From the sequence record NC_061442.1: a stretch of DNA of 64,000 nucleotides; one strand, 5' to 3'. Below the pieces are notes generated by a model. That model saw only the letters and a list, made by a program, of their open reading frames with translations. It had not been told where the DNA came from and ran no database searches. This document shows positions 1 to 42,950 of this stretch, in pieces. Numbering within the stretch: position 1 is the first letter of the stretch; each line of letters begins with the position of its first letter. The position numbers and the translations under genes are program-made.

Positions 1-629
1 TACTCGGCAACTGCGATCCTGTCAGCAAGCAACTGCCTCTTGTTACTCAAGGCGAAACAACGTATGCTGCGAACTGCCTGTTCATAGACATGGTAGGCGA
101 AGATACCGACACTGGTTCGTTCTCGTTCTGGGTAGAGAAGCTACTGGCTATCGGTATCTATGCTTATGCAGATGAAACTGGTATCTGGATTCCTGGCCTG
201 AACAAACACGAACTGGAAGCGGCTGTAGAGCAGGACGAACTCGGTGCGTTTGCCGGTATCAGTTTTGAAGCGACCTGCCGTCAACGTCAGACTCAAATGC
301 TGACCGTGATTGTCGATCACTTCCCTGAGTTGGTACGTTACGTTCTGGACTATCAGTTGCAGACAGGTGAAGACAAAATCTATCTGGCGCCTGAGAACGA
401 CTTCGCACAAGCGCTTGATCTGATTCTGCATAAAGAGATCGCTGGCTACGATGACATGTATGACCTGCTGATGTTCCAGCTGGCGTATGTTGATGACTGG
501 TACAACTTCGACTCTGCAATTCTGCCTGTGCCGTTTACGCTTCGTGCGCTCGACGAACAGCGTGAGTTCTGGGATGTGAACGTTGAGGAAACTGCGGTAG
601 TTATTACCAACGGCTTCGTCAGTCATAAT
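1..629 (+). mobile_element. Intein (C-terminal part) within recA
   Basis: Block F/G motif EFWDVNVEETAVVITNGFVSHN followed by Ser (+1 at 630-632). Upstream FWVEKLLAIGI resembles a degenerate LAGLIDADG segment. Confidence 0.85.
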
Positions 630-1169
630 AGTGATGTGCGTGTGCGTCTGGCCTCTCGTGCAGTACCTGAAGGTTGGCCGAAGCTGAAAGACGCTCCAGG
701 CATCGTCGGTGAGAAGTCTGTTACCGTCGAAGGTGGTACTGACCGTTATCGCTTCATCGCTGCTAAGACCATCAAGAACAAGATGGGCGGCATCCCGAAC
801 CAACAGACGTGGTTACGTTTGTGGGAAGCTGATGGTAACGGCGAAGCGCGAGGATTTGACCCAGTGTTCGATACGTGGCATTACCTGAAAACTCTCGGTC
901 TGGTTAACGGCACCCGTAAGTCGTTCAAACTGAAAGCACCGTGCCCGCTCGCATCTGATGTTAAGATGGACTGGGATGACTTCCGTACTCTTATCAACGG
1001 CAGCAAAGAACAAGTTGTCGGCGTGTGTAAGAAACTGAAAGTCAAACCATCAGGCCTGCGTTTGTGGTGCTTCAAGTTCGTTCAGTCTGTCAAAGGTAAC
1101 GACATGCTGAAAGCTGCTATCAGTAGGTCTGCCAAGAAGTCTGATGACGACGACGGCGACGACGAGTAA
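3..1169 (+). CDS. recA: RecA/UvsX-like recombinase, 5'-truncated by window edge, intein-containing
   Basis: Frame is open from nt 3. After the intein end, SDVRVRL...KTIKNKMGGIP...GFDPVFDTWHYLKTLGLV aligns with RecA ASVRLDI...KVVKNKIAAP...GINFYGELVDLGVKEKLI. Confidence 0.8.
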   Translation, partial: LGNCDPVSKQLPLVTQGETTYAANCLFIDMVGEDTDTGSFSFWVEKLLAIGIYAYADETGIWIPGLNKHELEAAVEQDELGAFAGISFEATCRQRQTQMLTVIVDHFPELVRYVLDYQLQTGEDKIYLAPENDFAQALDLILHKEIAGYDDMYDLLMFQLAYVDDWYNFDSAILPVPFTLRALDEQREFWDVNVEETAVVITNGFVSHNSDVRVRLASRAVPEGWPKLKDAPGIVGEKSVTVEGGTDRYRFIAAKTIKNKMGGIPNQQTWLRLWEADGNGEARGFDPVFDTWHYLKTLGLVNGTRKSFKLKAPCPLASDVKMDWDDFRTLINGSKEQVVGVCKKLKVKPSGLRLWCFKFVQSVKGNDMLKAAISRSAKKSDDDDGDDE

Positions 1170-1174
1170 TCCCT

Positions 1175-1202
1175 GGGCGGGCTTCGGCCTGCTCTCCTTT
1201 CT
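1175..1202 (+). terminator. Hairpin with UUCG loop, probable intrinsic terminator
   Basis: gggcgggc-ttcg-gcctgctc followed by a pyrimidine run, just after the stop. Confidence 0.55.
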
Positions 1203-1212
1203 GGAGAAAGAA

Positions 1213-1641
1213 ATGCGTACTCAAATCTACACCGCTGATATCGTTAATCTGGAGACCGTTGTCGTTGATGACGAAGGTCAAGAGACACGTAGCCCGACAA
1301 TCGTTCCTAATCTCGAAGGCGAACGTGACCTGACTGTTAGCACTCTCGGTACAATCATGGCTACCGTGACTGCTGAACCAAACGCTGATGCGCGCATGAT
1401 CGTTCTGGTATCTCGCGCTCTGGTTCCTGCTTTCGCAGACCCTGAAGGTGACCTGTTCGATATCTTCGACCCAATCGAACGTGTTGCTGATGTTGTTGCT
1501 GGGAACGTCGGTAGCGTTCTCGGTATGCAGGTAGTAATCAACGATAAGTCAGACGACAACGTTCTGGCCATCGCTGATGTTCTCGACAATGAAGCTGGCG
1601 TTATCATTCGTACCTACGGCGCTGCTATCATTCGCGTTTAA
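1213..1641 (+). CDS. Hypothetical protein (142 aa)
   Basis: ORF track; start moved to ATG 1213 after the GGAG RBS. Confidence 0.75.
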   Translation: MRTQIYTADIVNLETVVVDDEGQETRSPTIVPNLEGERDLTVSTLGTIMATVTAEPNADARMIVLVSRALVPAFADPEGDLFDIFDPIERVADVVAGNVGSVLGMQVVINDKSDDNVLAIADVLDNEAGVIIRTYGAAIIRV

Positions 1642-1683
1642 GTAAACCCTGTGCGGGAGAATGCCCTCTCGCACAATCCCTCT

Positions 1684-1736
1684 CTCGATAGGCAATAAGC
1701 CACGAGAAAACAAATCACTCGATAGGCAATACGCCA
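1684..1736 (+). repeat. Direct repeat ctcgataggcaata(a/c)gcca x2
   Basis: 1684-1702 and 1718-1736, 18/19 identical, directly upstream of the RBS of the 1747 gene. Confidence 0.85.
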
Positions 1737-1746
1737 GGAGTAATGT

Positions 1747-2448
1747 ATGAAAAAGATTCAACACGTAGTTCTTCCGACCGATGCACTCAACGGACTCATT
1801 CATGGTTATTATCACCACAGCAAAGGTACGGACGAATTTTGCAAGTCACTGTTCTACATTGACGTGACTGATCGTAGCGCCTCAGATGCGCTATACTCTA
1901 TTCTCAAACGAGACAGGACCTCAGGCATTGTTCCTATGGGTTACGATAGTCAAAAAGATGCGCGAGGCCACACTTCTCCTGCGTCTTTGGCGGTTGTACT
2001 GTCTAACAATTTACTGCATCTGGATGACAAGAAAATGTCCAGAGGCATTTTAACCATCTTCTCCGCTCTGGCTAGAACCACGCACACCAACAACACACAA
2101 ATAACTGTGTATGGGGAGCCGGGCGTAGACAAAATTCTAAACATAGTGCGTAGCGTTGGCTACAAGGACTATATTGAGGGTGAAGGTGCAGATGTTGTGC
2201 TTGGCGAATTTGATCTTGAGTCAAACATGACTATAGACCATTTCGTTCACATGGCTATCGAGCCTAAGTTCGAAGACGCTATCCGCAACTCGCCTGCGAC
2301 GGAGTTTAAACTGGGAGCAAACTTTATGTTCATGCACCCAGACGAGCTGGATAAGGTTGTCCGCATGATTCGCCGTTGCAGTAAGATCTGCATCATGCAC
2401 CCTGACATCCATCGCTATTACTTTGAGAACGTAATCTGTAAATACTGA
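1747..2448 (+). CDS. Hypothetical protein, paralog of 3586..4353
   Basis: ORF with AGGAG RBS; shares N- and C-terminal motifs with the 3586 ORF. Confidence 0.75.
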   Translation: MKKIQHVVLPTDALNGLIHGYYHHSKGTDEFCKSLFYIDVTDRSASDALYSILKRDRTSGIVPMGYDSQKDARGHTSPASLAVVLSNNLLHLDDKKMSRGILTIFSALARTTHTNNTQITVYGEPGVDKILNIVRSVGYKDYIEGEGADVVLGEFDLESNMTIDHFVHMAIEPKFEDAIRNSPATEFKLGANFMFMHPDELDKVVRMIRRCSKICIMHPDIHRYYFENVICKY

Positions 2449-2495
2449 TCAACAACCGAACACATTGCTGTGTGTAGTCTAGCCCGACTTGGGCA

Positions 2496-2527
2496 GGGGA
2501 GAGCCGGATGGCCTCCCCATTTTTTTT
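2496..2527 (+). terminator. Intrinsic terminator
   Basis: ggggag-a-gcc-ggat-ggc-ctcccc followed by a T run. Confidence 0.75.
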
Positions 2528-2550
2528 ATCTACGGCAGCAGGAGAACAGC

Positions 2551-3540
2551 ATGTCCAAAACGACTCCTCAAATCTTCCTCGACCTGTTTATCAAAGACGT
2601 TAGAATCTTTTTGCCTAAGTTCGACAAAGGTCTGGACGCGTACTTCTTGAAGTGCAAAGGCAAACCTGGAAACTTTGGCGTAGCGATACATCAATACTTG
2701 AAGTGGCTGAGTCCTATAGCAAAGCATCCAGAGAACCCAAGCAAACTCTCTATTACTATATCGGGTTACCTGCATTACTTTTGGCAATTGTCTAAACCAA
2801 ACTTTGTGTTTGAATCGACACTGGTTAATCACTTGGCGGACTCTGAATTGCCAGATAGGCTGCCGACAGAGATCTTGCAGAAACTCCCTTACTGGTGTCA
2901 GTGGGTAACATTGCCTATACATCTGGAGAATGCGTTCAGGACATTGCATCTTGACTTCGATGGTGCTTTTGTTGGGTACTCTCAGATCAACAATAGGCCT
3001 GTACTTGTTTTATGTGCTCCATTTGCTCCAGGTGATGAAAGCATCAAGTCAAATAACTTCACACCGTCTGTAACGTCATTCGTATATCTGGACGAACCTG
3101 TCGACCCTTGGTCAATGCTAAAGAACATGCACCTGTTAAATCTGGTTGATACTCTTGAGGACCCAGACTTTCGGGAACTGATGTTCAGCGTATACCACTA
3201 CCTAACAAAAGTTATGTGTTGTGTGATGTACATCTGTTCGCAGCAGGAAGCGTTATATACAGAAGGTCATACTCAGCCCAAGCCTCAACGTTTAGGCAAG
3301 AGCTATCGTATCACTCCGCCTAAGTCAGATCGCATGATCAATATAGGTTCGGAGATGATGCAGATTATCAAGGACTTCGAATCAGAAGTCGAAACGTGTA
3401 CTCGCGCTTTTAACGGACGCAAACCGCACCTGAGAAAAGCGCACTACCACCACTTCTGGACGGGACCGAAAGCTGGACATCGTAAGCTCGTTTGCAAGTG
3501 GTTGCCGCCAAGCGTTGTTCGAGGCACATCGCCTGAGTGA
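2551..3540 (+). CDS. Hypothetical protein with His-rich C-terminal motif (PHLRKAHYHHFWTGP)
   Basis: ORF track; start moved to ATG 2551 after CAGGAG. Confidence 0.8.
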   Translation: MSKTTPQIFLDLFIKDVRIFLPKFDKGLDAYFLKCKGKPGNFGVAIHQYLKWLSPIAKHPENPSKLSITISGYLHYFWQLSKPNFVFESTLVNHLADSELPDRLPTEILQKLPYWCQWVTLPIHLENAFRTLHLDFDGAFVGYSQINNRPVLVLCAPFAPGDESIKSNNFTPSVTSFVYLDEPVDPWSMLKNMHLLNLVDTLEDPDFRELMFSVYHYLTKVMCCVMYICSQQEALYTEGHTQPKPQRLGKSYRITPPKSDRMINIGSEMMQIIKDFESEVETCTRAFNGRKPHLRKAHYHHFWTGPKAGHRKLVCKWLPPSVVRGTSPE

Positions 3541-3585
3541 CGTAAATCAATACTCCACGTATGGGCGTTATGCCCGGAGGCTATT

Positions 3586-4353
3586 ATGAAATCTCGTGTA
3601 CAACATGCGTATATTCCTGATATGGAATCGTTTGACCCTTACGTCCGTTCTCTGTGCCATATGGCGCGAGCACTGGACACACCGAACTCTAACTACGGTA
3701 AGTTGAAACGTGTCGTGATCATTGGTACGTCGAAGCGCGTGGTCGAAGCCTACGTTAAGCAGTTACTCAACACAAACAACCTGCCACACACTCTCATTTG
3801 TTTTGGTGTAGACGAATCGCCTATCAGCCACAGAGACTATTCCTATGCTGGCGCCCACGTTGTGCTGATGCACGATCTGACTTACGTTGATAGTGGTACA
3901 ATGGGCAAGGTTGCCGCTCGCGTCCTAGAAATCATAGACAGCCTAAAACAGAAAGAAGGCGACACTGAACTCAAAAACAGCGAGCTGTCTTTGGTCTACT
4001 CGAACCCGCACCTGTGGTCTGCTATTCTTGACTACGGCGCTGCTTCATTCATGAACACGGCGGGCCGCAACATTGAATACCGTAGCGGTTTGGTTTCATC
4101 TATCGGTCTTGACGCGTTGATGAAATGCGAAAGCAACCAACAATACCACGAGCTTCGTGCCGAAACGATTACTATAGGCCTGGAGTTCTTCTGCATACAC
4201 ACGGACTACCTGCTATCCAAAGTACATAATCTGTTGTGGTCACTCTCGTGTGATGATTGCAAGTTCAAAAAGAATCACCGCATCATCTTCCATGAAGACT
4301 TTCGTCGTTTATTCTTCGAAGAATACATCCTAAGAGACTTCAAGGGCTTTTAA
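3586..4353 (+). CDS. Hypothetical protein, paralog of 1747..2448
   Basis: ORF with GGAGG RBS; shared motifs. Confidence 0.75.
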   Translation: MKSRVQHAYIPDMESFDPYVRSLCHMARALDTPNSNYGKLKRVVIIGTSKRVVEAYVKQLLNTNNLPHTLICFGVDESPISHRDYSYAGAHVVLMHDLTYVDSGTMGKVAARVLEIIDSLKQKEGDTELKNSELSLVYSNPHLWSAILDYGAASFMNTAGRNIEYRSGLVSSIGLDALMKCESNQQYHELRAETITIGLEFFCIHTDYLLSKVHNLLWSLSCDDCKFKKNHRIIFHEDFRRLFFEEYILRDFKGF

Positions 4354-4426
4354 GAATATTCTTAGCCTGCTCTCTAATTTCAATATGTTGGCAAGTAGTG
4401 CTGACATATCGTTATTGGAGAATAAC

Positions 4427-4687
4427 ATGTGCGGACGTAGCCTCGTTAGGTTGAAGTACCTCGCACGGTCATCGAACTGGTGCAATAATAAAGTAAACGC
4501 TTGTAGTGAGCGGAAGGCGAAGAATGTGCAATGTGAGGAATTTTTGGCAGCGACCAAGAATTGCCGCAGCGAACAGAAGTCGTCCAGTGTAGTTTCTTTC
4601 TTCAAAGGTCATGAGCTTGTTGGTCAGGCTATATGGCATGAGATTGAAGGAGACAGCACACTTCAATTCCGGTTGCTACTTGCTTAA
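4427..4687 (+). CDS. Small hypothetical protein (86 aa)
   Basis: GGAG RBS before ATG 4427; followed by a terminator. Confidence 0.5.
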   Translation: MCGRSLVRLKYLARSSNWCNNKVNACSERKAKNVQCEEFLAATKNCRSEQKSSSVVSFFKGHELVGQAIWHEIEGDSTLQFRLLLA

Positions 4688-4692
4688 CGACA

Positions 4693-4733
4693 GAGGGCCT
4701 TTCAGATTAACATCTGGTGGGCCCTTTCTTCTT
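4693..4733 (+). terminator. Intrinsic terminator
   Basis: agggcc...cagat-taac-atctg...ggccct followed by a T-rich run. Confidence 0.65.
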
Positions 4734-4789
4734 TATATGCTAATTTTCTCCTGTCATTAACACACAAACCTACTTCGGGGTATAACACT

Positions 4790-6862
4790 ATGTCTTTGAT
4801 TAAAATCGAAGGCGTCCAATCATTGTCTGCGCCCACCAAAGCTCAGAAAGACGCCGCTGTTTATATGTTTGGCTCCAAGGGCCATTCAATCGTTGCTGTG
4901 CTTGACAAGTTCAGCCGTGCGAAAGAAGTGCGCACCGCACACATCGACGGTCTGCTAAAGCTGATGAAAGATGGAGACGATGAAGAAATCATCAAGTTCA
5001 CCGCATCTGCTCCTGGTAAGAAAACCATCGCGGCTGCGAAGCAATTCGCTGTAGCAAAAACACTGGCCGCCAGCATCAAAGCACTGAAACTTGTGCGCGT
5101 TCCGATGAAGTGGATAGATGGTCACTCTGATGCCGCTGCTGCTCGTATTACCGAGACAAAAGAAATCCGCGCGCGTAAGACTGCTGGCAATCGACCTGAG
5201 AAGCCAATCAAGCTCGACAACCCACACGCGCCAGAAGCCACCGTAGTGACGCAGACGGATTCAAATTCTCCTCTCAGCAGAATCTACACTCTGCCTAAAT
5301 CAGTTGCTGGCTATGGCTATGCGCTTACTCCTCAGTGGAAAGCAATCATCGTCGCAGCAAACGAAGCGCTTAAAGGCATGTTTGTTCTCAAGTGGGCTAA
5401 GTCCGAAGGCTGTCCTCAGATCATACCAGTAGGCAAAGGCTATCGCTCAATTCCTAACGCTTACTTGGGCGCTGCTGTTGCTGATAATAGCTGGCATCTG
5501 TATGCAGTCGCTCCTTCTGATAAGAAAGGCTCAGGTATTGAAGGCCGCATGATCGGTAACAAGCTGACCATGGCTTCTGTTGCAGCATTCATGCGTGACG
5601 TTATGGCACAGCAAGGCTCACCTCAGACCGCAGCAATCAACAAGATGATCGCTGGCGCTACTGTGTTCGATAAAGAAGTTGTTATCACCGAAGCAAATAA
5701 CCCTGACCTGAAAGCAATTGGTGACGTCAAACGTGCGCAGGACGCAGAGGGTACAGCTAAAGGTGCGATCAACTCTGTTACTAAAATCACCCCGACCAAC
5801 GTGTCTAAGATCACACGCGGCGCACAGGTCAAGATCGAGCAACAACTGGATAGTAAATTGAGCGGTGTGTTGGGTAATGCGCAGTTCCGTGAAAAGGGTA
5901 CCTATCTGGCACTTGACGGTTACCTGTTTGAAATGAGCGCGCCAGAGTCATACAAAGGCGTAGCGAAGCTGGCCAGCTATGCGGTCATTCCACCTCAGAC
6001 CAAAACAGGTCTGGCAGGTAAGAACTGGCGCGTAAGTGCGTTGAAGATTGGTCGTGCTTCCGCTGCTGATATCATTGATATCGGGCCTAAGTTCTCTTTG
6101 GCTAAAGTCAAGTCGGCTGTACGTCAACTTGCTGGTGCCGCTGAATCTACCGTGTACACGCCGTCAGGTAAAACCGACATCGCGCTGGTGGACGAACTCG
6201 CAGAAATCCCTGCACGTAAGATCTCTGCTAAGCCTTTGCAGGCGCGTGAAGAATATTTCAATGCACTGCGCACGGTACTACAGAACAATCTGCCTAAGCG
6301 TGAAGTGTCTGCCACCTCTACCGGTGTTGTGATCGGTGGTAGCAAGCTGCATACCTTACGTCTAGATAACAACACATGGACGTTGCAGACTGGTGTAACA
6401 GGCAAGACGAAGAAAGTCGGATCTACGTTCGATATCGTTGATCTTTTGGCGCTGGTGGACAAGGGTATTCTGCGCCCAAAGCCTGAAGGCGGCTCTACGA
6501 CCATTCGTAAGCAGCCGCCTTTCTTTGACCGCGTAACAAAAGACGCCAAGACAGGTGAGTACCGTACTATCATTCAGGCTAACGAGAACCAAGCGTATCA
6601 GGTTGCCGTGAAGCGTGAAGGAGATACGTTCGTGTTCACCTCTCCTGTGTATCCTGCTGTCCAGCGTTTCGTAACACAGGGTATGACAGAGGCTGACGTT
6701 ATGTGGGAGACGTTCACAGGCAAGAGCGTGACCTTCTCCAAAGAAGACGCTGATAAGTTTGAGAAGTGGCTAAAGTCAATTCGTAAAACTCAGTCTCTGA
6801 CCAGCAATTATCTGTTCCCTGCGATTGCACCAACACGCAGTGGTGGCGGTATGAGTATGTAA
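4790..6862 (+). CDS. Large Ala/Lys-rich hypothetical protein (690 aa), possibly virion-associated
   Basis: Long ORF bounded by terminators; no recognisable motif. Confidence 0.85.
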   Translation: MSLIKIEGVQSLSAPTKAQKDAAVYMFGSKGHSIVAVLDKFSRAKEVRTAHIDGLLKLMKDGDDEEIIKFTASAPGKKTIAAAKQFAVAKTLAASIKALKLVRVPMKWIDGHSDAAAARITETKEIRARKTAGNRPEKPIKLDNPHAPEATVVTQTDSNSPLSRIYTLPKSVAGYGYALTPQWKAIIVAANEALKGMFVLKWAKSEGCPQIIPVGKGYRSIPNAYLGAAVADNSWHLYAVAPSDKKGSGIEGRMIGNKLTMASVAAFMRDVMAQQGSPQTAAINKMIAGATVFDKEVVITEANNPDLKAIGDVKRAQDAEGTAKGAINSVTKITPTNVSKITRGAQVKIEQQLDSKLSGVLGNAQFREKGTYLALDGYLFEMSAPESYKGVAKLASYAVIPPQTKTGLAGKNWRVSALKIGRASAADIIDIGPKFSLAKVKSAVRQLAGAAESTVYTPSGKTDIALVDELAEIPARKISAKPLQAREEYFNALRTVLQNNLPKREVSATSTGVVIGGSKLHTLRLDNNTWTLQTGVTGKTKKVGSTFDIVDLLALVDKGILRPKPEGGSTTIRKQPPFFDRVTKDAKTGEYRTIIQANENQAYQVAVKREGDTFVFTSPVYPAVQRFVTQGMTEADVMWETFTGKSVTFSKEDADKFEKWLKSIRKTQSLTSNYLFPAIAPTRSGGGMSM

Positions 6863-6863
6863 C

Positions 6864-6892
6864 AAAAGGGGTGGCTTCGGCTGCCCCTTTTT
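6864..6892 (+). terminator. Strong (bidirectional-type) intrinsic terminator
   Basis: aaaa-ggggtggc-ttcg-gctgcccc-ttttt. Confidence 0.9.
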
Positions 6893-6920
6893 GCGTCTAT
6901 ATGCGCCTGAAAGCTGACTA

Positions 6921-7002
6921 ACTCTGCATATAATAGGTTGAAATAGCGGTGTACGCATATCAGTCAAAATGATACAATATAGTCTCTAGCGCAATAACGC
7001 GC
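6921..7002 (+). promoter_or_regulatory. Class-A phage promoter (upstream GG box + extended -10 + hairpin)
   Basis: actctgcatataataGGttgaaat; TGaTACAAT at 6970; gcgc-aataac-gcgc hairpin. Confidence 0.8.
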
Positions 7003-7027
7003 ATAACACTGCCGAGGGGCAAAAACA

Positions 7028-7399
7028 ATGACTATCAAATTTAACTCTGTTTACGAAATCTTTGAAGCTATGGAAATGTGCGCCAGCGATTCTGCTTTCA
7101 CCAAACAATGCGGTTTCCCTTATCCTGCGGTAGAAATTTTGCAGTGTGGTTTGCAGGAAGATTTAGGTGTGTATGCGTCAATGGCAGACGGCGTGAATTT
7201 CCTGATTGCAGATACGAGTGACCTGTTTTCTGAACATCTTCAAGGTGATGGTGAAATCACCGTTTGTCGTATCGAAACTCCCAACGGTGAGATGTTCGAC
7301 GAGCCAGAAGCTATCGTTGCGCAGCTGGGGACATTCAACGATTTTGATGAAGCATACGCAGCATTCACCACAGCCATAAACGCTGAACTCAACAAATAA
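7028..7399 (+). CDS. Small acidic hypothetical protein
   Basis: ORF with GAGGGG RBS. Confidence 0.8.
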   Translation: MTIKFNSVYEIFEAMEMCASDSAFTKQCGFPYPAVEILQCGLQEDLGVYASMADGVNFLIADTSDLFSEHLQGDGEITVCRIETPNGEMFDEPEAIVAQLGTFNDFDEAYAAFTTAINAELNK

Positions 7400-7469
7400 T
7401 AGGTCAAAAGCGCTATAGCAATATAGCGCTATTTATCGTACTATATATTCTCTAGCGCAATGATGCGCA
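7387..7469 (+). promoter_or_regulatory. Class-A phage promoter
   Basis: actcaacaaataataGGtcaaaa; TACTAT at 7439 (37 nt from GG); gcgc-aatgat-gcgc hairpin. Confidence 0.7.
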
Positions 7470-7496
7470 CATACAACACTTGCCAAGGGGCATACA

Positions 7497-7871
7497 ATGA
7501 AAGCAGCAAACTTCGATAAAGCATTCAACGCGAAAGATGAAGCAACTCTGAACGCATACGCAGCGCAAATCGTTGAAGCGCTCAACGCTCTGGGACGTAA
7601 TGACCTGAAGATCACTATTATCTTCGGCACTGACCCGTACGGCGAGCGCCCCGACTTCGTTAACGACCCCAACGGTTTTCGTGTCGTGCAGAACGGGGAA
7701 GAAATTTTCGATATCTACACCCCAACTGAAAAACAGATTGAAGGCGATGCGTCTGACGCTTTCATCTACGCTTCATGGGCAGACGGTGTAGCGCCGTGGG
7801 GCAAAGAAGTTTCAGACAATGACGTTGCTGAAATCGCAGCGCACCTGAACACTGCAATCCCAGCTCTGTAA
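7497..7871 (+). CDS. Small acidic hypothetical protein
   Basis: ORF with AAGGGG RBS. Confidence 0.8.
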   Translation: MKAANFDKAFNAKDEATLNAYAAQIVEALNALGRNDLKITIIFGTDPYGERPDFVNDPNGFRVVQNGEEIFDIYTPTEKQIEGDASDAFIYASWADGVAPWGKEVSDNDVAEIAAHLNTAIPAL

Positions 7872-7933
7872 CGAACAACTGACTGCGGGGTTACGGCCCC
7901 GCTTATATGACAACTTGCCAAGAGAACATAATC

Positions 7934-8239
7934 ATGACCAGAGAAGAACTGACTACACTGATTAGCAACTCACTCACACGCACTGACTTCGCAGTAATGA
8001 ACTGCGTAGAGCCTGATGACTACGAACTTGTTTTGCTCTATGAAGTAGACAGCGCTGGTGAATCACTTGGCGAGATGGGTTATGAAGTAGAATTGAATGA
8101 TGACGGCACATTCTCGCTTCACTACCTTGAGATGCCGTGGTCTCCTGAGCCGTTCCCGTCGTTCGCTAAAACTTCGAACTTCGACGAACTGATGGCAGCG
8201 ATAAACAGTATCGAGTTTCACGTTTCAGGTACTAACTAA
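7934..8239 (+). CDS. Small acidic hypothetical protein
   Basis: ORF track; start moved to ATG 7934. Confidence 0.7.
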   Translation: MTREELTTLISNSLTRTDFAVMNCVEPDDYELVLLYEVDSAGESLGEMGYEVELNDDGTFSLHYLEMPWSPEPFPSFAKTSNFDELMAAINSIEFHVSGTN

Positions 8240-8257
8240 CATTAAGAGGCAACAATC

Positions 8258-8503
8258 ATGTCAGAGAAACAAATCATCATCGACGTAATCGCAGACGTAG
8301 CATCACCAACAGAAGTTGTGTTTGAAGATGGCGAGTCTTCTAATCAATGGCTCGCGCCGTTCGATCTGCGCCTGACTGTGGCCCAGGCCTGCGGTCCGGC
8401 GGGCGTACCAGAAGTGAACATCATCGGCGATGAAGATAACCTGCGCCGCTTCTTGGCCGCGAACGATCAGTTCGAAGACGCTGAGATCGTAGACGTTATC
8501 TAA
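8258..8503 (+). CDS. Small acidic hypothetical protein
   Basis: ORF with GAGG RBS. Confidence 0.8.
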   Translation: MSEKQIIIDVIADVASPTEVVFEDGESSNQWLAPFDLRLTVAQACGPAGVPEVNIIGDEDNLRRFLAANDQFEDAEIVDVI

Positions 8504-8512
8504 CAAACAAAG

Positions 8513-8536
8513 AGCGGCGCTTCGGCGCTGCTTTTC
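8513..8536 (+). terminator. Intrinsic terminator
   Basis: agcggcgc-ttcg-gcgctgct-tttc. Confidence 0.8.
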
Positions 8537-8559
8537 TATTTCTGCCTGAGAATGCTGCT

Positions 8560-9117
8560 ATGAAAAATCAATATCTCATTATTCGCATGAACGCCGCAAA
8601 CTTCTACGACAAACAGTTTCTGATGCGTGGCTTTAACGCCAAGCGTATCGAGCAGGTCATTGGCGTTATCGTTATCATAGGCGATGAACATACATACTCG
8701 CTGAAAGACAGCATGTATCATTTAGCAAAAATTCACGTCGAACAGCTTACATCTGACACACAACAAAATTTAGTTAAGCTACGCTGGTCGAGCGTAGACA
8801 GCAAGCGCATAGAAGAAGGCTTGACGCGCATACCCACTGACTTGACAGACGCCATACGTGCGATGCGCAACACTCGATTGTATTATGAAGTCGATACGAC
8901 AATCCCACAGGCGTTTCGTGACTGCCACACTGAATTTGATATACCTACTGGTGCGCAAATGCGTGAGCGCATAAACAAACGACAACGTGAAGACGAGACA
9001 AAGATCAAACTTGTTGACCGCTCGCACGTAACGAAAGCGCTTAACGATTGCACTGTGGAAGAAATTCTAAAGCACCTGAAAGAGCGCACGGGCGCTGAGA
9101 TCACAATCAAGCTGTAA
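8560..9117 (+). CDS. Hypothetical protein
   Basis: ORF track, fills the gap on +. Confidence 0.75.
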   Translation: MKNQYLIIRMNAANFYDKQFLMRGFNAKRIEQVIGVIVIIGDEHTYSLKDSMYHLAKIHVEQLTSDTQQNLVKLRWSSVDSKRIEEGLTRIPTDLTDAIRAMRNTRLYYEVDTTIPQAFRDCHTEFDIPTGAQMRERINKRQREDETKIKLVDRSHVTKALNDCTVEEILKHLKERTGAEITIKL

Positions 9118-9180
9118 CAACTAATCAATGTGTGGCGTTACGGCGCCACATCATCACAACTTAATAGAGAGAATCACATC

Positions 9181-9789
9181 ATGTCTATCGTAACTTTTTT
9201 CGTAAAACGTTCTTATGCTTCACTTGGCGCAGGCAACTTCGCTATCGCTGCCTCACAGGTGCAAGAGCTGGCAGAAGCTGAGTGCTTCATCGTCTACACT
9301 AACACGGGACTGGGTAACACGTTCGCTGTGCGTAACATCACGATCACACCGCTCGATGAAAACAGCGTGACTGTTTCATTCGACCCTCTCACCGATGTTC
9401 ACGCGCTGCCTGCTTCGATTCTCCCTAAAGAGATTTTGAAAGAGTCAGTCGAGCGTATCGTAATGCCAGAAGAAGATATGCGTGAAGTGCCACGCTTCTA
9501 TATCGCCAACGATGCAAATGGCAATAACCCGAACCTGCTTGCGCTTGATCTGAACTGCCGTCAACGTTTCGTGCAGTATCATGGCGGCCTGTGTACGCTG
9601 ACCGATCTTGTGCTGGCGCTGTACGAGTCAGGCATTCATATCTCTGACATTCATCATGGCGTGAAGCAGAAAAGCAACGTTGCTGCCGTACTAGCACAAT
9701 ATCCCCGCACCGTGTTTGAGCTTAACAAAGATAACGGCGTTGTGAACGACAGCCTGCCTGCGCTGGCGCGTATGACCGTACTAATGTAA
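9181..9789 (+). CDS. Hypothetical protein
   Basis: ORF track; start moved past the UACG hairpin to ATG 9181. Confidence 0.75.
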   Translation: MSIVTFFVKRSYASLGAGNFAIAASQVQELAEAECFIVYTNTGLGNTFAVRNITITPLDENSVTVSFDPLTDVHALPASILPKEILKESVERIVMPEEDMREVPRFYIANDANGNNPNLLALDLNCRQRFVQYHGGLCTLTDLVLALYESGIHISDIHHGVKQKSNVAAVLAQYPRTVFELNKDNGVVNDSLPALARMTVLM

Positions 9790-16493: not shown

Positions 16494-17554
16494 ATAAGAC
16501 CGTTGGCCTGATGATTGATGAAGACGTAATGAACTGGCTGGACATGCTGCTTGCTGGTGAACTCAGCAACGTCTTAGGCGCGTTGAACAATATCGTATAC
16601 GCCCGCCGTCAGGAACTGTCTGTCGAACGTCTAACAGAAGACGAAGACATTGCAGCACTTTCTCACAAAGAGTTGGAAATCATCCTGCGTTACGCTTCAC
16701 CTGAGCATGAGTACGACACGTCCGTGCTGTCTAATGAGCAACTGCTTCGTTTGGCGATGGACGCACAAGGGATCATCTCGTACACATTGCCGTGCCACTG
16801 TTCGCCTATCATGGTTCAACGTGCTTTCGCTAACGGCCAGATCAAATCGTTGTTGGGTAGCTTCTCTAATCGTGCTGATATCGTCATGGCAGTTCATCAT
16901 TGGGAATGTGGCCTGACTAACATCTCACTTGATGCTATTGTGGGAAATGATGTGCGCCCAGACGAGCAGGGGCTGTATCTGTGTTACGACGAACATAAAC
17001 AGGTACGTTATGGTCGCCTGTTCCGAAATGCCAACGACGGCTGGACATTCCATGAATCGTATGCTGCTGGTGGTTCGACTTCGTGGTTCGAAGAGGGCGA
17101 AGGTAAAGCTCTTGACGACGATGACCTGCCGATCAATCTGCTGTCTAACTGGGTATTCGTAGCGCCTGATCAATCACCGTCAATCATTCGCAAAGAGACG
17201 GACATTAAACGTCTGTCTGAAACGCAACGCATCTTCCTGTATTTGCGTAGCCTGAGTCCTCACGTCAAAGCAGAAATCGTTGCGCATTTCGATGGCGTGT
17301 TGAACAATCGCGTATTCACTTCTGTTGAGCAGATTGGTCGCCTTACAGAAACTGACTGGCGCAATGCTGCTATCGCTATCGGTGAAGAAGAACGTGGGCA
17401 AGAAGGTAAACACTTCTGGGATGACCGTGGTGCTTGGGCTTGTTTCGTTGCTGTGCTCAACTCTCTGAGCTATGACATGGAGACACGCGACTTCCAACCT
17501 CAATACGAATATCAAGCTAACGACGACACTCTGGAAGAAGACAACAATGGCTAA
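16490..17554 (+). CDS. Hypothetical protein (354 aa)
   Basis: Long ORF, ATGA overlap. Confidence 0.8.
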   Translation: MNKTVGLMIDEDVMNWLDMLLAGELSNVLGALNNIVYARRQELSVERLTEDEDIAALSHKELEIILRYASPEHEYDTSVLSNEQLLRLAMDAQGIISYTLPCHCSPIMVQRAFANGQIKSLLGSFSNRADIVMAVHHWECGLTNISLDAIVGNDVRPDEQGLYLCYDEHKQVRYGRLFRNANDGWTFHESYAAGGSTSWFEEGEGKALDDDDLPINLLSNWVFVAPDQSPSIIRKETDIKRLSETQRIFLYLRSLSPHVKAEIVAHFDGVLNNRVFTSVEQIGRLTETDWRNAAIAIGEEERGQEGKHFWDDRGAWACFVAVLNSLSYDMETRDFQPQYEYQANDDTLEEDNNG

Positions 17555-18086
17555 ATCACTCGGTGTATATATGACTTACATTCTGCGACACAAGCCGCAG
17601 GATATCGGGATCGCAATGGACACTCAGGGTTGGGTGTCCATTCAGGACTTCTTGGAAAAAGCGAGCTACAAGAATAAGCCCATCACACGCGATCAGTTAT
17701 TGGCTGAGGTAGTTGAAGACGAAAAAGGCCGCTTCCAGTTGAACGCCGCGCAGACCCGCATTCGTTGCGTTCAGGGTCACTCGGTTGAGAACGTCATCAT
17801 GAACCTCGAACTATACACGCTAATCACCGACCCCGTGTATCACGGTACTGCGGAAAAGAACGTTGCTTCTATTCTGGCGCAAGGTCTATTGAAAGGTAAA
17901 CGCAAGCACGTTCACATCTCCGCTAATGTGGCTACAGCGAAACAAGTAGGTCAACGTCATGGTTCGCCTGTTGTGTTTGAGATCGACACTTACGCCATGA
18001 TCACGCACGGCTATAAATTCTACCGTGCCGAGAATGGAGTCATCCTGACCGACCACGTACCGTCCCGATATATCAAGTTGGTGTAG
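17547..18086 (+). CDS. kptA: RNA 2'-phosphotransferase (Tpt1/KptA)
   Basis: YILRHKP, KGRFQ, IRCVQGHS, YHGT, KRKHVHIS, RHG motifs; start moved to ATG 17547. Confidence 0.95.
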   Translation: MAKSLGVYMTYILRHKPQDIGIAMDTQGWVSIQDFLEKASYKNKPITRDQLLAEVVEDEKGRFQLNAAQTRIRCVQGHSVENVIMNLELYTLITDPVYHGTAEKNVASILAQGLLKGKRKHVHISANVATAKQVGQRHGSPVVFEIDTYAMITHGYKFYRAENGVILTDHVPSRYIKLV

Positions 18087-18102: not shown

Positions 18103-18489
18103 ATGCGTCATTGGGGATCGCGCTATGTGCGATCCTCCTCCGGCAAGTGGTATTCAGTTCATGGCCGTGAGGGTACGTGGGTAACGAATCGTTACGGTAC
18201 TTCATTCTATCGAAGCGGCTCCGAAGTATGGCGTGACATAACCCGCGCTGACCGCGAATCGCTAGAGCGTGAATTAATCAAACGTACACGCGAAGACTTT
18301 AAGGAGAATAAACTCAAGTATAACCACTGGGGCAATATAGTGAGGGCTATTGCTAGGCAGTCAGAAGACGAAAAGAATGAGCATACGGCAGAACTTGCTG
18401 AGATGCTCGAAGCGCTTAGACAGACTTTCTACGGACAGAAGGTACAGCAACTAAGCACAATTCTGGACGAAATAGCCGTTAAGAAGTAG
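18103..18489 (+). CDS. Hypothetical protein
   Basis: GGAG RBS before ATG 18103. Confidence 0.7.
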   Translation: MRHWGSRYVRSSSGKWYSVHGREGTWVTNRYGTSFYRSGSEVWRDITRADRESLERELIKRTREDFKENKLKYNHWGNIVRAIARQSEDEKNEHTAELAEMLEALRQTFYGQKVQQLSTILDEIAVKK

Positions 18490-18510
18490 GCTGATTCGTG
18501 CTATAATAGA
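18450..18510 (+). promoter_or_regulatory. Class-A phage promoter, upstream box embedded in the preceding ORF
   Basis: aagcacaattctGGacgaaatagc (GG at 18465); TGcTATAAT at 18499. Confidence 0.75.
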
Positions 18511-18556
18511 GATGAACGCTAGACAGTCGTTTAGCTACTTACATGAGGACATGTAT

Positions 18557-20005
18557 ATGAAAAAGATTAAACACACTTTCCGTCTGACCGATTTGGTACA
18601 TATCTCCAAACTTCCTGCAGGTATGTCCAAATTCCATGAAGGTTCGGACGCGATTGTTGTCGGTCGTAATGAAGATAGCGACCAGTATATTCTGCACGTT
18701 AAGCATGTCGGTGAGCTTTCATGGTACGAAGGTAAATCACTGACTCTGATTAGCCATAACAACGGTGAACTGCTTGACCAGTGGGAAGCGGGTGATTATG
18801 GTCGTGACAAGAAAAAGAAACGCAAGATCCCAAAAGAACTGCGTAACTTCACGGCAATCCTGCCTGTGACCTGCAATGCCGATTGTTCGTTCTGCCCTGA
18901 GAAAGAGATGGAGCAGAAAGCCAATCAGAAAGAATGGCAAGATGGTTTGATTGCCCAGATCAAACGCATGTACAAGAAAACGAAGTTCGACCATGTATCA
19001 ATCAGTGGCGGTGAACCTACGTTGCGAACAAAGTTCCTGTTTGAAACGATTGACCGTATTCAGAAAGAAACGCCGATCAAGAAAGTCGGTCTGACTTCTA
19101 ACGGTCAGTTCCTCGAGAAGCCAAACAGCACGTTCGACTTCTTAGACCGTAACACTACGCCTGAGATGACCAGCAAGCTGTCGCATCTGAATATCAGTAT
19201 GCACTCATTCAATCGTGAACGTGCCAACAAGATCATGGGCGTGAACTACAAACAGACCCTGGAAGATTTAGTTCGCTTCCGCCGTCAGCTTGGTCGTGAC
19301 GTTAGCTTCCATATTAACTTCGTGATCAACGATCAGACAGGCTCGATTACGGAAGAGTTCAAAGCTGCTGCTAACTTCATGCGGGCCAACCCATTCATCG
19401 ACGTTGTGTTCCGTGTTGACTACAACGATGTTGAACTGTCAAAAGCACTGCGTGACTACGCTATGGAGTATGAGGAGTACAACACCGCCGTGCGTACTTC
19501 GAAAAGGAAACTCAAGTTACTTGCCCCACGAGCACCTCACATCGTTCAGAAGTTTGATCGCTTCTTCGGTGGCCAGAATCTCGATGACGTTGAAAGCGCT
19601 TGGACTACAGGCTGCCCGTCGTGCTTCACTCATGCGTCGAACCCTGTCAATAATAGTCGCGCATATTTGAAAGCGTCTTCCTACGAACCTAATGAAGACG
19701 AAGCGGAGTACACTGAGCTGGTGTATCACATGGATGGCGCTCTGTATTGGGACTGGACTCGCAATGACCCTGTGCCGCTGCCACGCAGTAAACGTTTTGA
19801 CTTCGAGATGAAGGAAGAGAGGGCCGATAAGCCTATGCCTCGTTTGAAAAGCGCGCCTAAAGCGAAGACTGTGAAGAAAGCAAAAACCACCAAGAAAGAA
19901 ACTCCTACAACGAGTTCCGGAAGCTGTCACTATTCCGCGCCTTGTAGCTACAGCCAGGGCACTGGCGGTTCCTGTAGCTTCCGTAGCGGCGGTTGCAACT
20001 ATTAA
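18557..20005 (+). CDS. Radical SAM enzyme with extra N-terminal domain and Cys/Ser/Gly-rich C-tail
   Basis: CNADCSFC (CxxxCxxC), SGGEPT, TSNG; start moved to ATG 18557 (GAGGA RBS). Confidence 0.9.
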   Translation: MKKIKHTFRLTDLVHISKLPAGMSKFHEGSDAIVVGRNEDSDQYILHVKHVGELSWYEGKSLTLISHNNGELLDQWEAGDYGRDKKKKRKIPKELRNFTAILPVTCNADCSFCPEKEMEQKANQKEWQDGLIAQIKRMYKKTKFDHVSISGGEPTLRTKFLFETIDRIQKETPIKKVGLTSNGQFLEKPNSTFDFLDRNTTPEMTSKLSHLNISMHSFNRERANKIMGVNYKQTLEDLVRFRRQLGRDVSFHINFVINDQTGSITEEFKAAANFMRANPFIDVVFRVDYNDVELSKALRDYAMEYEEYNTAVRTSKRKLKLLAPRAPHIVQKFDRFFGGQNLDDVESAWTTGCPSCFTHASNPVNNSRAYLKASSYEPNEDEAEYTELVYHMDGALYWDWTRNDPVPLPRSKRFDFEMKEERADKPMPRLKSAPKAKTVKKAKTTKKETPTTSSGSCHYSAPCSYSQGTGGSCSFRSGGCNY

Positions 20006-20982: not shown

Positions 20983-21558
20983 ATGGAAAAGAAATTCTGC
21001 AAACTGGCGCACATGGGTGCCGACGTGATTATGCCTGCTATCCTGTACGCATTGAATGAGAAGATGCAGGCAGGAGTCAAAGTAGATCTGGCCGAAGCGT
21101 ATACGTTGTTGAACGATACTCAGGCTGTGTACCTAACTATGGCAGGCGGTCAGCCTGATCGCTATTACGATCAACTCACGCCAACTATTCGTTTTCTTCT
21201 GGCAAAGTATGAAATAGAGTGGGCACTCGACCACGCGGCGCTTACGAAATACTGTCAAGCGTATATGGAGAGCAAGGGCTTCACTCCTGTTGGCGATGGC
21301 GTGTATTCATATCCAGAAGTTGTTTTGTATGGCAACTATGACCGAGTGTTCCTGCGTTCATTGATTAGTGACGCGGACTACAATCTACTGGGCGCTGCAA
21401 TACAGGACGAGATGGACGTTGCGGCCGAGATGGACGAGATTGATAAGAAACTCGATCGAGTAGAAGACGGCTGCTGCTCTGAGTGCGGTGCAAAACTAGA
21501 TCCCGATATTGATGGCCCGTTCATGTGCCTAGCATGTGACGAGGATGATGGAGAATAA
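20983..21558 (+). CDS. Hypothetical protein with C-terminal Zn ribbon
   Basis: CSECG...CLAC. Confidence 0.75.
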   Translation: MEKKFCKLAHMGADVIMPAILYALNEKMQAGVKVDLAEAYTLLNDTQAVYLTMAGGQPDRYYDQLTPTIRFLLAKYEIEWALDHAALTKYCQAYMESKGFTPVGDGVYSYPEVVLYGNYDRVFLRSLISDADYNLLGAAIQDEMDVAAEMDEIDKKLDRVEDGCCSECGAKLDPDIDGPFMCLACDEDDGE

Positions 21559-21560
21559 AA

Positions 21561-21824
21561 ATGGCTGTAGGCTTCGTAAAAGATGATGGCGTTAATGACA
21601 CCATCGAAGCTAACCTGAACAACGAGATTGACCGCGCCCGTGCAGAACTCTTAGGTAAGGGCACTACGCATTGCGTTAACCCTGATTGCGGTGCAGAGAT
21701 TCCCCTCATGCGCCGTGTAGCAATGCCGAATGCACGTTACTGTGTTGCCTGTCAATCAAGCCACGATGGTTCGGCGGTGAGCCTGTACAATCGTCGTGGT
21801 TCAAAAGATTCTCAACTGAGGTAA
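21561..21824 (+). CDS. ybiI: DksA/TraR C4-type zinc finger protein (YbiI-like)
   Basis: DDGVNDTIEANL..EIDRARA..C..CG.EIP..RR.A.P..RYCVACQ..YNRRGSKDSQLR, matching enterobacterial YbiI including the C-terminus. Confidence 0.9.
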   Translation: MAVGFVKDDGVNDTIEANLNNEIDRARAELLGKGTTHCVNPDCGAEIPLMRRVAMPNARYCVACQSSHDGSAVSLYNRRGSKDSQLR

Positions 21825-42868: not shown

Positions 42869-42950
42869 AGTATGCAGAAAACTGGACAAAATCGTGGTTG
42901 TTATCTGACGGCCACCTATGCTATAATAGATTCAGACGCAATAGTGCGTC
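42869..42950 (+). promoter_or_regulatory. Class-A phage promoter
   Basis: gtatgcagaaaactGGacaaaat; TGcTATAAT at 42919; gacgca-atag-tgcgtc hairpin. Confidence 0.85.

Follow-up and report, generated by a model that had tools for sequence, protein, structure and literature searches.

A mostly phage-borne family of radical SAM proteins with a conserved cysteine-repeat tail, represented by gp272 of Erwinia phage pEa_SNUABM_35

The DNA analysed here is the final 64 kb of the genome of Erwinia jumbo phage pEa_SNUABM_35 (NC_061442.1, genus Alexandravirus, 261.7 kb); this stretch is referred to as the window, and its coordinates are converted to those of the record by adding 197719. The gene under study, gp272 (nt 18557–20005, + strand), specifies a protein of 482 amino acids (aa) that is annotated in NC_061442.1 as a hypothetical protein. 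It is the sole radical S-adenosylmethionine (rSAM) gene of the phage, a search of the genome with PF04055 having given one match. The protein ends in a Cys-repeat tail that is kept by all of its close relatives and by most of a wider family, and which may be a substrate of the enzyme that carries it.

The coding sequence divides into several segments, all read from the + strand. The N-terminal accessory domain (aa 1–85, nt 18557–18811) is rich in beta-strands, and in the AlphaFold2 (AF2) model, which was built for the full protein with 52 homologous sequences, it has predicted local distance difference test (pLDDT) scores of about 73–92, five strands (aa 13–16, 31–37, 43–48, 54–58 and 62–66) and a helix (aa 70–77). 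It has no Pfam match and is confined to a clade of Alexandravirus, Sasquatchvirus and Yersinia phage, being absent from the orthologues of Snuvirus and Rivsvirus and from the wider family; nor was it found as a separate gene just upstream in the latter two genera, where the open reading frames (ORFs) show no similarity to it. The partial-barrel rSAM core follows (aa 95–344, nt 18839–19588, pLDDT >90), with Pfam matches to Fer4_12 and to PF04055 (Radical_SAM, 1.4e-13; 51.7 bits against a cut-off of 29.5, aa 104–259). It contains the SAM-cluster motif CX3CX2C as CNADCSFC (aa 106–113, nt 18872–18895; C106, C110 and C113) and the SAM-binding motif GGE (aa 151–153). The cluster motif, the PF04055 score above threshold, the partial (beta/alpha)6 barrel and GGE together identify gp272 as a member of the radical SAM superfamily. 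The C-terminal subdomain (aa 345–412, nt 19589–19792) begins with a beta-hairpin (AF2 strands 349–353 and 356–360), the turn of which carries CPSC (C353 and C356, nt 19613–19624) as part of CPSCFTH (aa 353–359), and continues with K372, E377-P378, E387, H391 and D399-W400. A disordered Lys-rich linker (aa 413–448, nt 19793–19900, pLDDT <50) then leads to the Cys-repeat tail (aa 449–482, nt 19901–20002), which reaches the C-terminus and contains C457, C463, C473 and C480, each within a C-x-[Y/F] triplet (CHY, CSY, CSF and CNY). The initial annotation, made from the letters of the DNA, had described an rSAM core, a flexible Lys-rich linker, a tail of four Cys, an extra CPSC..H site and an accessory domain of about 85 aa, and Pfam, AF2 and the sequence place all of these where it had put them.

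Among the 1879 ORFs of at least 40 aa in the whole phage genome, gp272 is the only real ORF with a Cys tail of this kind. The sole look-alike is an ORF antisense within the helicase gene, so that no second substrate with the same tail was found elsewhere in the phage. As the pattern is unique in the genome and conserved in every close homologue, it is not a product of chance.

Searches with tblastn found the gp272 gene in 47 phage records, the carriers being Alexandravirus, Sasquatchvirus Y3, Snuvirus, Rivsvirus, Dickeya phage AD1 and Yersinia phage fHe-Yen9-02. The Cys tail ends the protein in 16/16 aligned phage homologues, and the linker varies freely in length and sequence. A word-index search of metagenomes extended the close family to a further 57 homologues with identities down to 35%, mostly on contigs of jumbo-phage size, and a Cys tail follows the core in every one (57/57). 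In these proteins the end of the core, D-W-x-R, is invariant and is followed by 9–75 variable residues, usually net basic, before the first Cys. Their tails have 2 or 4 Cys (46/57), rarely more, in the context [S/G]-[S/R/G]-C-[G/S/N/R]-[Y/F]; the spacing is mostly 5–8, and the last Cys stands 0–2 residues from the C-terminus in 52/57. C463 and C473 are almost invariant in the close-family alignment, and a C-G-[Y/F] C-terminus is common in the clade of gp272. A divided tail occurs in Alexandra (locus L004, nt 1501–3096), SNUABM_2 (L003, nt 1501–3078) and SNUABM_16 (L002, nt 1501–3021), where two separated Cys pairs, C-S-F..C-S-Y and C-G-Y..C-G-Y, are found with about 45 Lys-rich residues between them. 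Such split tails suggest that the functional unit of the tail may be the Cys pair.

A profile search of 1.84 billion representatives returned 2783 proteins at E <1e-3 and 350 clusters at E <1e-10. In an alignment of 197 representatives of this wider family, a fused tail with at least two Cys is present in 181, so that the conservation on which the initial annotation had hinged its proposal is seen in phages, close metagenomic relatives and wider homologues alike. The SAM-cluster Cys are kept in 194/197, G151, E153 and N212-x-S214 in 197/197, G152 in 193/197, H216, R286 and E387 in 196/197 each, and D399-W400 in 195/197. Hairpin residues C353 and C356 (196/197) are the only two conserved Cys of the core besides those of the SAM cluster. 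The tail motif of the wider family is [G/S]-C-G at the extreme C-terminus, and about 80% of non-terminal Cys are followed by Gly; since this motif has no conserved aromatic residue, the aromatic at +2 is special to the clade of gp272. The last Cys lies 0–3 aa from the end in 147/166 tails. Tails have 2–10 Cys, mostly spaced by 3 to 13, and the number is even in 115 and odd in 51 (about a third). The local context does not change from copy to copy, and some tails consist of a single unit, for example YSGCGG, repeated in tandem. Judged from these alignments, the universal elements of the tail are the Cys and their position at the very end.

The genomic contexts of the family are phage-like throughout, and matches in the ESM Atlas are generic 'radical SAM' clusters, mostly viral. 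Nearly all members are unannotated or mislabelled as MoaA. A literature search found no description of this rSAM family; the paper on phage AD1 lists the gene only as 'radical SAM superfamily protein'. One branch (P0222, P0224, P0232, P0238, P0241 and P0243) has, in place of a Cys tail, a Cys-free C-terminal extension of about 100 aa that ends in K-Y-N-L, and retains CPVC at the hairpin. At a locus of this branch (L036, nt 3923–5203) no partner ORF was found within 4 kb.

In at least five lineages without a fused tail, a basic linker and/or coiled coil together with a Cys tail is encoded by a separate small gene adjacent to that of the enzyme. In locus L017 (nt 7011–7316), the gene of P0058, a tail-less member of the close family, is followed after 44 nt by an ORF of 101 aa that combines a coiled coil and a Lys-rich stretch with a pair of Cys at its C-terminus. 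Partners are found directly downstream of a 269-aa enzyme in L026 (nt 2770–3018, 82 aa), 3 nt downstream in L050 (nt 4810–5007, 65 aa), directly upstream in L040 (nt 3620–3901, 93 aa), and two genes downstream in L020 (nt 5991–6230, with four Cys); in L024 the motif is at the N-terminus of the upstream protein. This split arrangement recurs in unrelated branches, and the background of tail-like ORFs in these loci is 3/783. Parsimony, applied to a tree of core sequences, makes fusion the ancestral state and disperses the unfused forms over the tree, with about 13 changes from fused to unfused, a rough count because the deep topology of the tree is unreliable. Neither the tail nor the split partners matched a family in Pfam or NCBIfam, which gave only sub-threshold matches to coiled coils. 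The layout is that of an rSAM maturase and its precursor peptide, an analogy that speaks for the tail being a cognate peptide module.

A further link between tail and enzyme comes from natural variants. One wider-family representative lacks both the hairpin Cys and the tail Cys, and a search from it gave two more proteins at 44% identity. In P0199, P0206 and P0207, NPVS stands for CPVC at the hairpin, three to five tail positions read G-H-G where relatives have G-C-G, and the invariant Glu (E387) has gained a neighbouring Cys-His pair. Retention of the tail, with His for Cys and the context unchanged, means that tail and hairpin site act as a single functional unit. It is almost certain that the tail acts together with the active site or hairpin CxxC, either as the enzyme's own substrate or as a metal-binding arm, and the G-H-G subclade is a natural Cys-to-His 'ligand swap' control.

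Structural comparison of the gp272 model gave GDGT-MAS (Z 17.6), MoaA (Z 17.1) and viperin (Z 16.7) as matches. For P0173, a relative of 276 aa with a short linker of about 20 residues, the matches were MoaA (Z 19.5 over 243 residues), SuiB (Z 17.8), SkfB (Z 17.1), PqqE (Z 16.0) and CteB (Z 14.2); BlsE was also among the best structural matches. The alignment of P0173 with MoaA runs through the hairpin subdomain as far as MoaA residue 307, a stretch that in MoaA holds an incompletely ligated auxiliary cluster with three Cys, the free iron of which binds the nucleotide substrate. MoaA and gp272 share the CX3CX2C, GGE and N-x-S-x-[D/H] motifs, and the CxxC of gp272 falls in the stretch aligned to the C-terminal region of MoaA. 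The differences are nonetheless considerable. Scores of gp272 against the NCBIfam models for MoaA are 58.6, 55 and 50.2 bits against cut-offs of 231, 325 and 284, it lacks Mob_synth_C (PF06463) and the full CX2CX13C, having two of the three C-terminal cluster Cys, and MoaA itself has no tethered Cys tail. In an hhalign comparison with a MoaA-like protein only the N-terminal two thirds align. The orthologue of Erwinia phage Y3 (HOS33_gp274; L010, nt 1501–2844) is labelled 'GTP 3',8-cyclase MoaA' in RefSeq, a name that is very likely wrong, since gp272 falls far short of the MoaA cut-offs and lacks the C-terminal motif and domain.

The best NCBIfam match of gp272 is the His-Xaa-Ser maturase HxsC, at 59 bits against a cut-off of 267.9. 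As all NCBIfam scores are far below cut-off, the protein belongs to the rSAM superfamily and to none of its curated families. Several specific assignments were considered and rejected. Viperin and the prokaryotic viperins score 49.6 bits against 180 and 26.7 against 450, and there are few conserved basic residues for a triphosphate. Glycyl-radical activases score 33 bits against 231.75 (PFLA) and 31 against 131 (NrdG2), and the gp272 tail is disordered and has no Gly after its Cys. R-C-G-[Y/F] in relatives recalls the glycyl-radical target R-V-x-G-[Y/F], but the wider family has no aromatic residue after the Gly. Formylglycine formation of the anSME type was discounted, as there is no C-x-P-x-R motif.

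The initial annotation had also given gp272 a promoter of its own, and this agrees with a consensus scan that predicts a sigma-70-like promoter with an extended -10 element at nt 18479–18507 (TTAAGA, 17 nt, TGCTATAAT), having 10/12 consensus matches and TG preceding the -10. Upstream of the orthologue, the -10 block is kept in SNUABM_2, SNUABM_20, SNUABM_32, Alexandra and AD1, and partly in Y3. The extended -10 string TGCTATAAT has one other exact copy in the window, at nt 42919–42927 (2 found against 0.28 expected), and this may be a promoter of the same type. A small inverted repeat in the 5' untranslated region (nt 18518–18535, + strand) lies between the promoter and the Shine-Dalgarno sequence and is kept in related phages. 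In Alexandra the repeat is different yet self-complementary (GCTGTACA..TGTACAGC); this has the look of a compensatory change and suggests that an RNA hairpin is conserved at this site. The Shine-Dalgarno sequence GAGGA (nt 18545–18549, + strand) stands 7 nt before the ATG at nt 18557 and is invariant in the alignment of related phages. A longer in-frame start at nt 18512 is unlikely because Alexandra differs by 2 nt in length between the two ATGs, so that the frame is not conserved there.

The upstream neighbour gp270 (nt 17547–18086, + strand) is annotated as an RNA 2'-phosphotransferase of the Tpt1/KptA family (PHROG 5470 at 9e-64), and this neighbour is also present at the Alexandravirus, Sasquatchvirus, Snuvirus and Yersinia phage loci. 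Distant members of the family likewise lie amid genes of RNA-repair type (L026, nt 580–3728; L023, nt 5071–7424; L021, nt 1–1010 and 7038–9268), which specify Metallophos and Macro proteins, a DSPc-like phosphatase, Thg1, RNA ligase and CCA-adding enzyme. This neighbourhood may merely be a shared accessory region of large phages. Downstream of gp272, two small proteins (nt 20983–21558 and 21561–21824) have zinc-ribbon motifs of the Cys4 type, and one of them is annotated in related phages as a DksA/TraR-type zinc finger.

Our preferred interpretation, to which we give a probability of roughly 40%, is that the tail of gp272 is a tethered substrate of its own enzyme, within a mostly phage-borne rSAM family that carries its cognate peptide. 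The linker would give the Cys-repeat tail the freedom to enter the MoaA-like barrel at its lateral opening, where the tail thiolates, in pairs, would bind a metal or iron–sulfur (Fe-S) half-site at C353 and C356. Within this scheme, binding at the hairpin is the most likely role for the thiolates because the core alone cannot ligate an Fe-S cluster. The 5'-deoxyadenosyl radical generated at the CX3CX2C cluster could in this way reach residues beside the tail Cys (G, S or N at +1, and Y or F at +2 in the gp272 clade). The enzyme would then modify its own tail, and tail-less relatives a separately encoded partner. The most likely chemistry would be oxidative, Cys-centred crosslinking of the thioether type, with each repeat unit serving as one site. 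Tail docking, the binding of a metal, the reaction chemistry and any part played in infection are what we infer from these comparisons.

Several lines of evidence favour a substrate: the low-complexity sequence of the tail, its repeat logic, the split layout resembling that of maturase and precursor, and the presence of peptide-modifying rSAM enzymes among the best fold matches. Retention of the tail behind a hypervariable linker, its covariation with the hairpin CxxC, and the placing of the two extra core Cys in the stretch aligned with MoaA also count in favour. In the short-linker relative P0173, modelled from 74 aligned sequences, pLDDT is 91 for the 10 residues past the core and 56–68 for the two-Cys end, against about 30 for the gp272 tail, a prediction which suggests that the tail of P0173 may be partly ordered on the core. 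The variable copy number, constant context and tandem units, as read from the sequences, are typical of repeated substrate sites and not of a fixed set of ligands. As no other protein of the phage carries the motif, the tail of gp272 itself is the only candidate peptide substrate. The SPASM/twitch maturases (CteB/SCIFF, PapB, SkfB/AlbA and SuiB) offer the nearest parallel, an rSAM enzyme acting with a short Cys-repeat peptide that is adjacent in the split cases, and SuiB, SkfB and CteB are among the good fold matches. As with these enzymes, a cognate Cys peptide is encoded together with the gp272-type enzyme, mostly fused and in five lineages as an adjacent gene, its role as substrate being putative. 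In the present family, however, the enzyme usually bears the peptide at its own C-terminus as a fusion, the carriers are phages, and no protease or exporter gene is nearby. A second parallel is mycofactocin, whose precursor MftA ends in C-G-V-Y and is acted upon at its C-terminal Tyr by MftC, an enzyme that has a SPASM domain and needs MftB. Here too an rSAM enzyme would act on the extreme C-terminus of a peptide, and C-G-[Y/F] ends are common in the gp272 clade; gp272 itself, however, has H, S or N following its Cys, and aromatic residues are absent from the motif of the wider family.

A number of observations weigh against a tethered substrate. AF2 gives the linker and tail (aa 413–482) pLDDT scores below 50, with about 30 for the tail, which it leaves undocked; the docking into the barrel that the initial annotation had proposed to test with AlphaFold was thus not obtained, although non-docking is not evidence against binding of the tail because AF2 contains no clusters. 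Several tail-less relatives have no partner gene within 4 kb. In place of the seven-Cys SPASM motif gp272 has CxxC only, with no SPASM match in Pfam, no recognition element for peptides that are made on the ribosome and modified after translation (RiPPs) was detected in it, and the models for PapB, CcpM, CefB, GggB and similar enzymes score 19–21 bits against cut-offs of 340–650. When RNA and expression data were searched, no RNA run containing gp272 was found. Replacement of Cys by His is more typical of metal ligands than of substrate residues, a fused substrate restricts the enzyme to few turnovers with no evident benefit to the phage, and the RNA-repair-type neighbours could point to a nucleic-acid substrate.

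Set against the initial annotation, which had proposed a fused enzyme-substrate that modifies its own tail, these results speak for the cognate peptide module, through retention of the tail and the split adjacent genes, and leave self-modification as a proposal. Its analogy with sactipeptides and ranthipeptides is weak, given that gp272 lacks the SPASM Cys motif and falls far short of the NCBIfam cut-offs for those maturases, and that the aromatic residue is unconserved in the wider family. The alternative it had named, binding of a metal or Fe-S cluster by the tail, has support equal to or better than that for self-modification, because the core has just two extra Cys, these lie at a position aligned with MoaA, and Cys loss and the His swap occur jointly in one subclade.

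That alternative, which ranks second and is possible though on balance unlikely, holds that the tail is a ligand arm: a pair of tail Cys and the hairpin CxxC would 'clasp' an auxiliary [4Fe-4S], [2Fe-2S] or mononuclear metal centre, which would serve catalysis on another substrate (nucleotide, RNA or DNA), the basic linker binding the polymer or acting as a lid. The exactly two conserved extra Cys of the core, at a CPxC knuckle, are too few for a cluster of their own, and tails with 2 or 4 Cys are the commonest, even counts being preferred, if not strictly. Loss of the hairpin Cys coincides with the change of tail Cys to His and with the new Cys-His pair by E387, as in classical ligand remodelling. 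The best fold match is MoaA, the auxiliary cluster of which binds a nucleotide, and the Lys/Arg-rich linkers and RNA-repair neighbours (Tpt1, RNA ligase, CCA-adding enzyme, Thg1 and Metallophos) would suit such a substrate. Ligands of Fe-S clusters, however, are normally ordered and fixed in spacing, whereas here the spacing is mostly 3–13, the copies number 2–10 and the disordered linker has 9–75 aa. Tandem duplication of the motif would bring a ligand no gain, a cluster ligand would not usually split off as a coiled-coil protein of its own, and about a third of tails have an odd number of Cys. The few conserved basic residues of the core (R286 and K372) are poor provision for a triphosphate or nucleic acid. 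The ligand arm and the tethered substrate are not mutually exclusive, by analogy with CteB, in which a substrate Cys has been reported as ligand at the open site of the auxiliary cluster.

Third in order, and improbable, is a role for the tail as a consumable or recyclable helper, which would supply a redox-active CxxC with reducing equivalents, or else donate sulfur or hydrogen atoms, and spend one Cys pair per turnover on another substrate. A precedent is the R1 subunit of class I ribonucleotide reductase, the flexible C-terminal tail of which visits the active site with its Cys pair. In favour of this are the mostly paired Cys at the very end of a flexible tail, the classical redox character of CxxC, the joint loss of hairpin and tail Cys in one subclade, and the prospect that more repeats would give more turnovers. 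In that subclade, however, Cys is replaced in place by His in the same G-x-G context, which a thiol shuttle does not predict. The likeness to R1 is an analogy only; R1 has an unrelated fold and chemistry, and the present family has variable repeats and a Cys-to-His variant unfit for a thiol shuttle; no result indicates a reductive reaction. Last, and very improbable, a tail unrelated to catalysis (for localisation or assembly, as an appendage binding nucleic acids or condensates, or as a handle for host Fe-S assembly) would agree with a linker resembling basic low-complexity DNA-binding tails and with the disorder of the tail in the AF2 model, but would leave unexplained the strict retention of Cys in fixed context at the C-terminus across roughly 30–35% identity, the covariation with the hairpin CxxC, and the split partners adjoining tail-less enzymes.

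Radical SAM enzymes with Cys-rich peptides are known from bacterial peptide natural products, and auxiliary clusters are known as fixed parts of enzymes. The viral family represented by gp272 joins both ideas, in that a two-Cys half-site of the enzyme occurs with a mobile, repeat-bearing Cys tail, fused or split. The family is apparently undescribed, and there is a substantial chance that it holds something more unusual than an rSAM enzyme with a cognate Cys peptide or auxiliary site. Should the tail be the substrate, gp272 would represent a naturally fused enzyme and substrate and open a route to new phage peptide chemistry; should it be a ligand arm, it would show a new means of building, and perhaps of gating, an auxiliary centre. 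In either case the family offers a clean, testable system, as one gene or as a natural two-gene pair. More tentatively, these phages may carry a 'self-loaded' class of rSAM enzymes, in which repeat units with Cys or His, borne on a tether or by a small partner protein, would fill out an auxiliary metal site that is otherwise half-built and would be transformed themselves. Such a system would be without a described counterpart, and would provide a crosslinked or otherwise modified peptide or protein end for use in infection.

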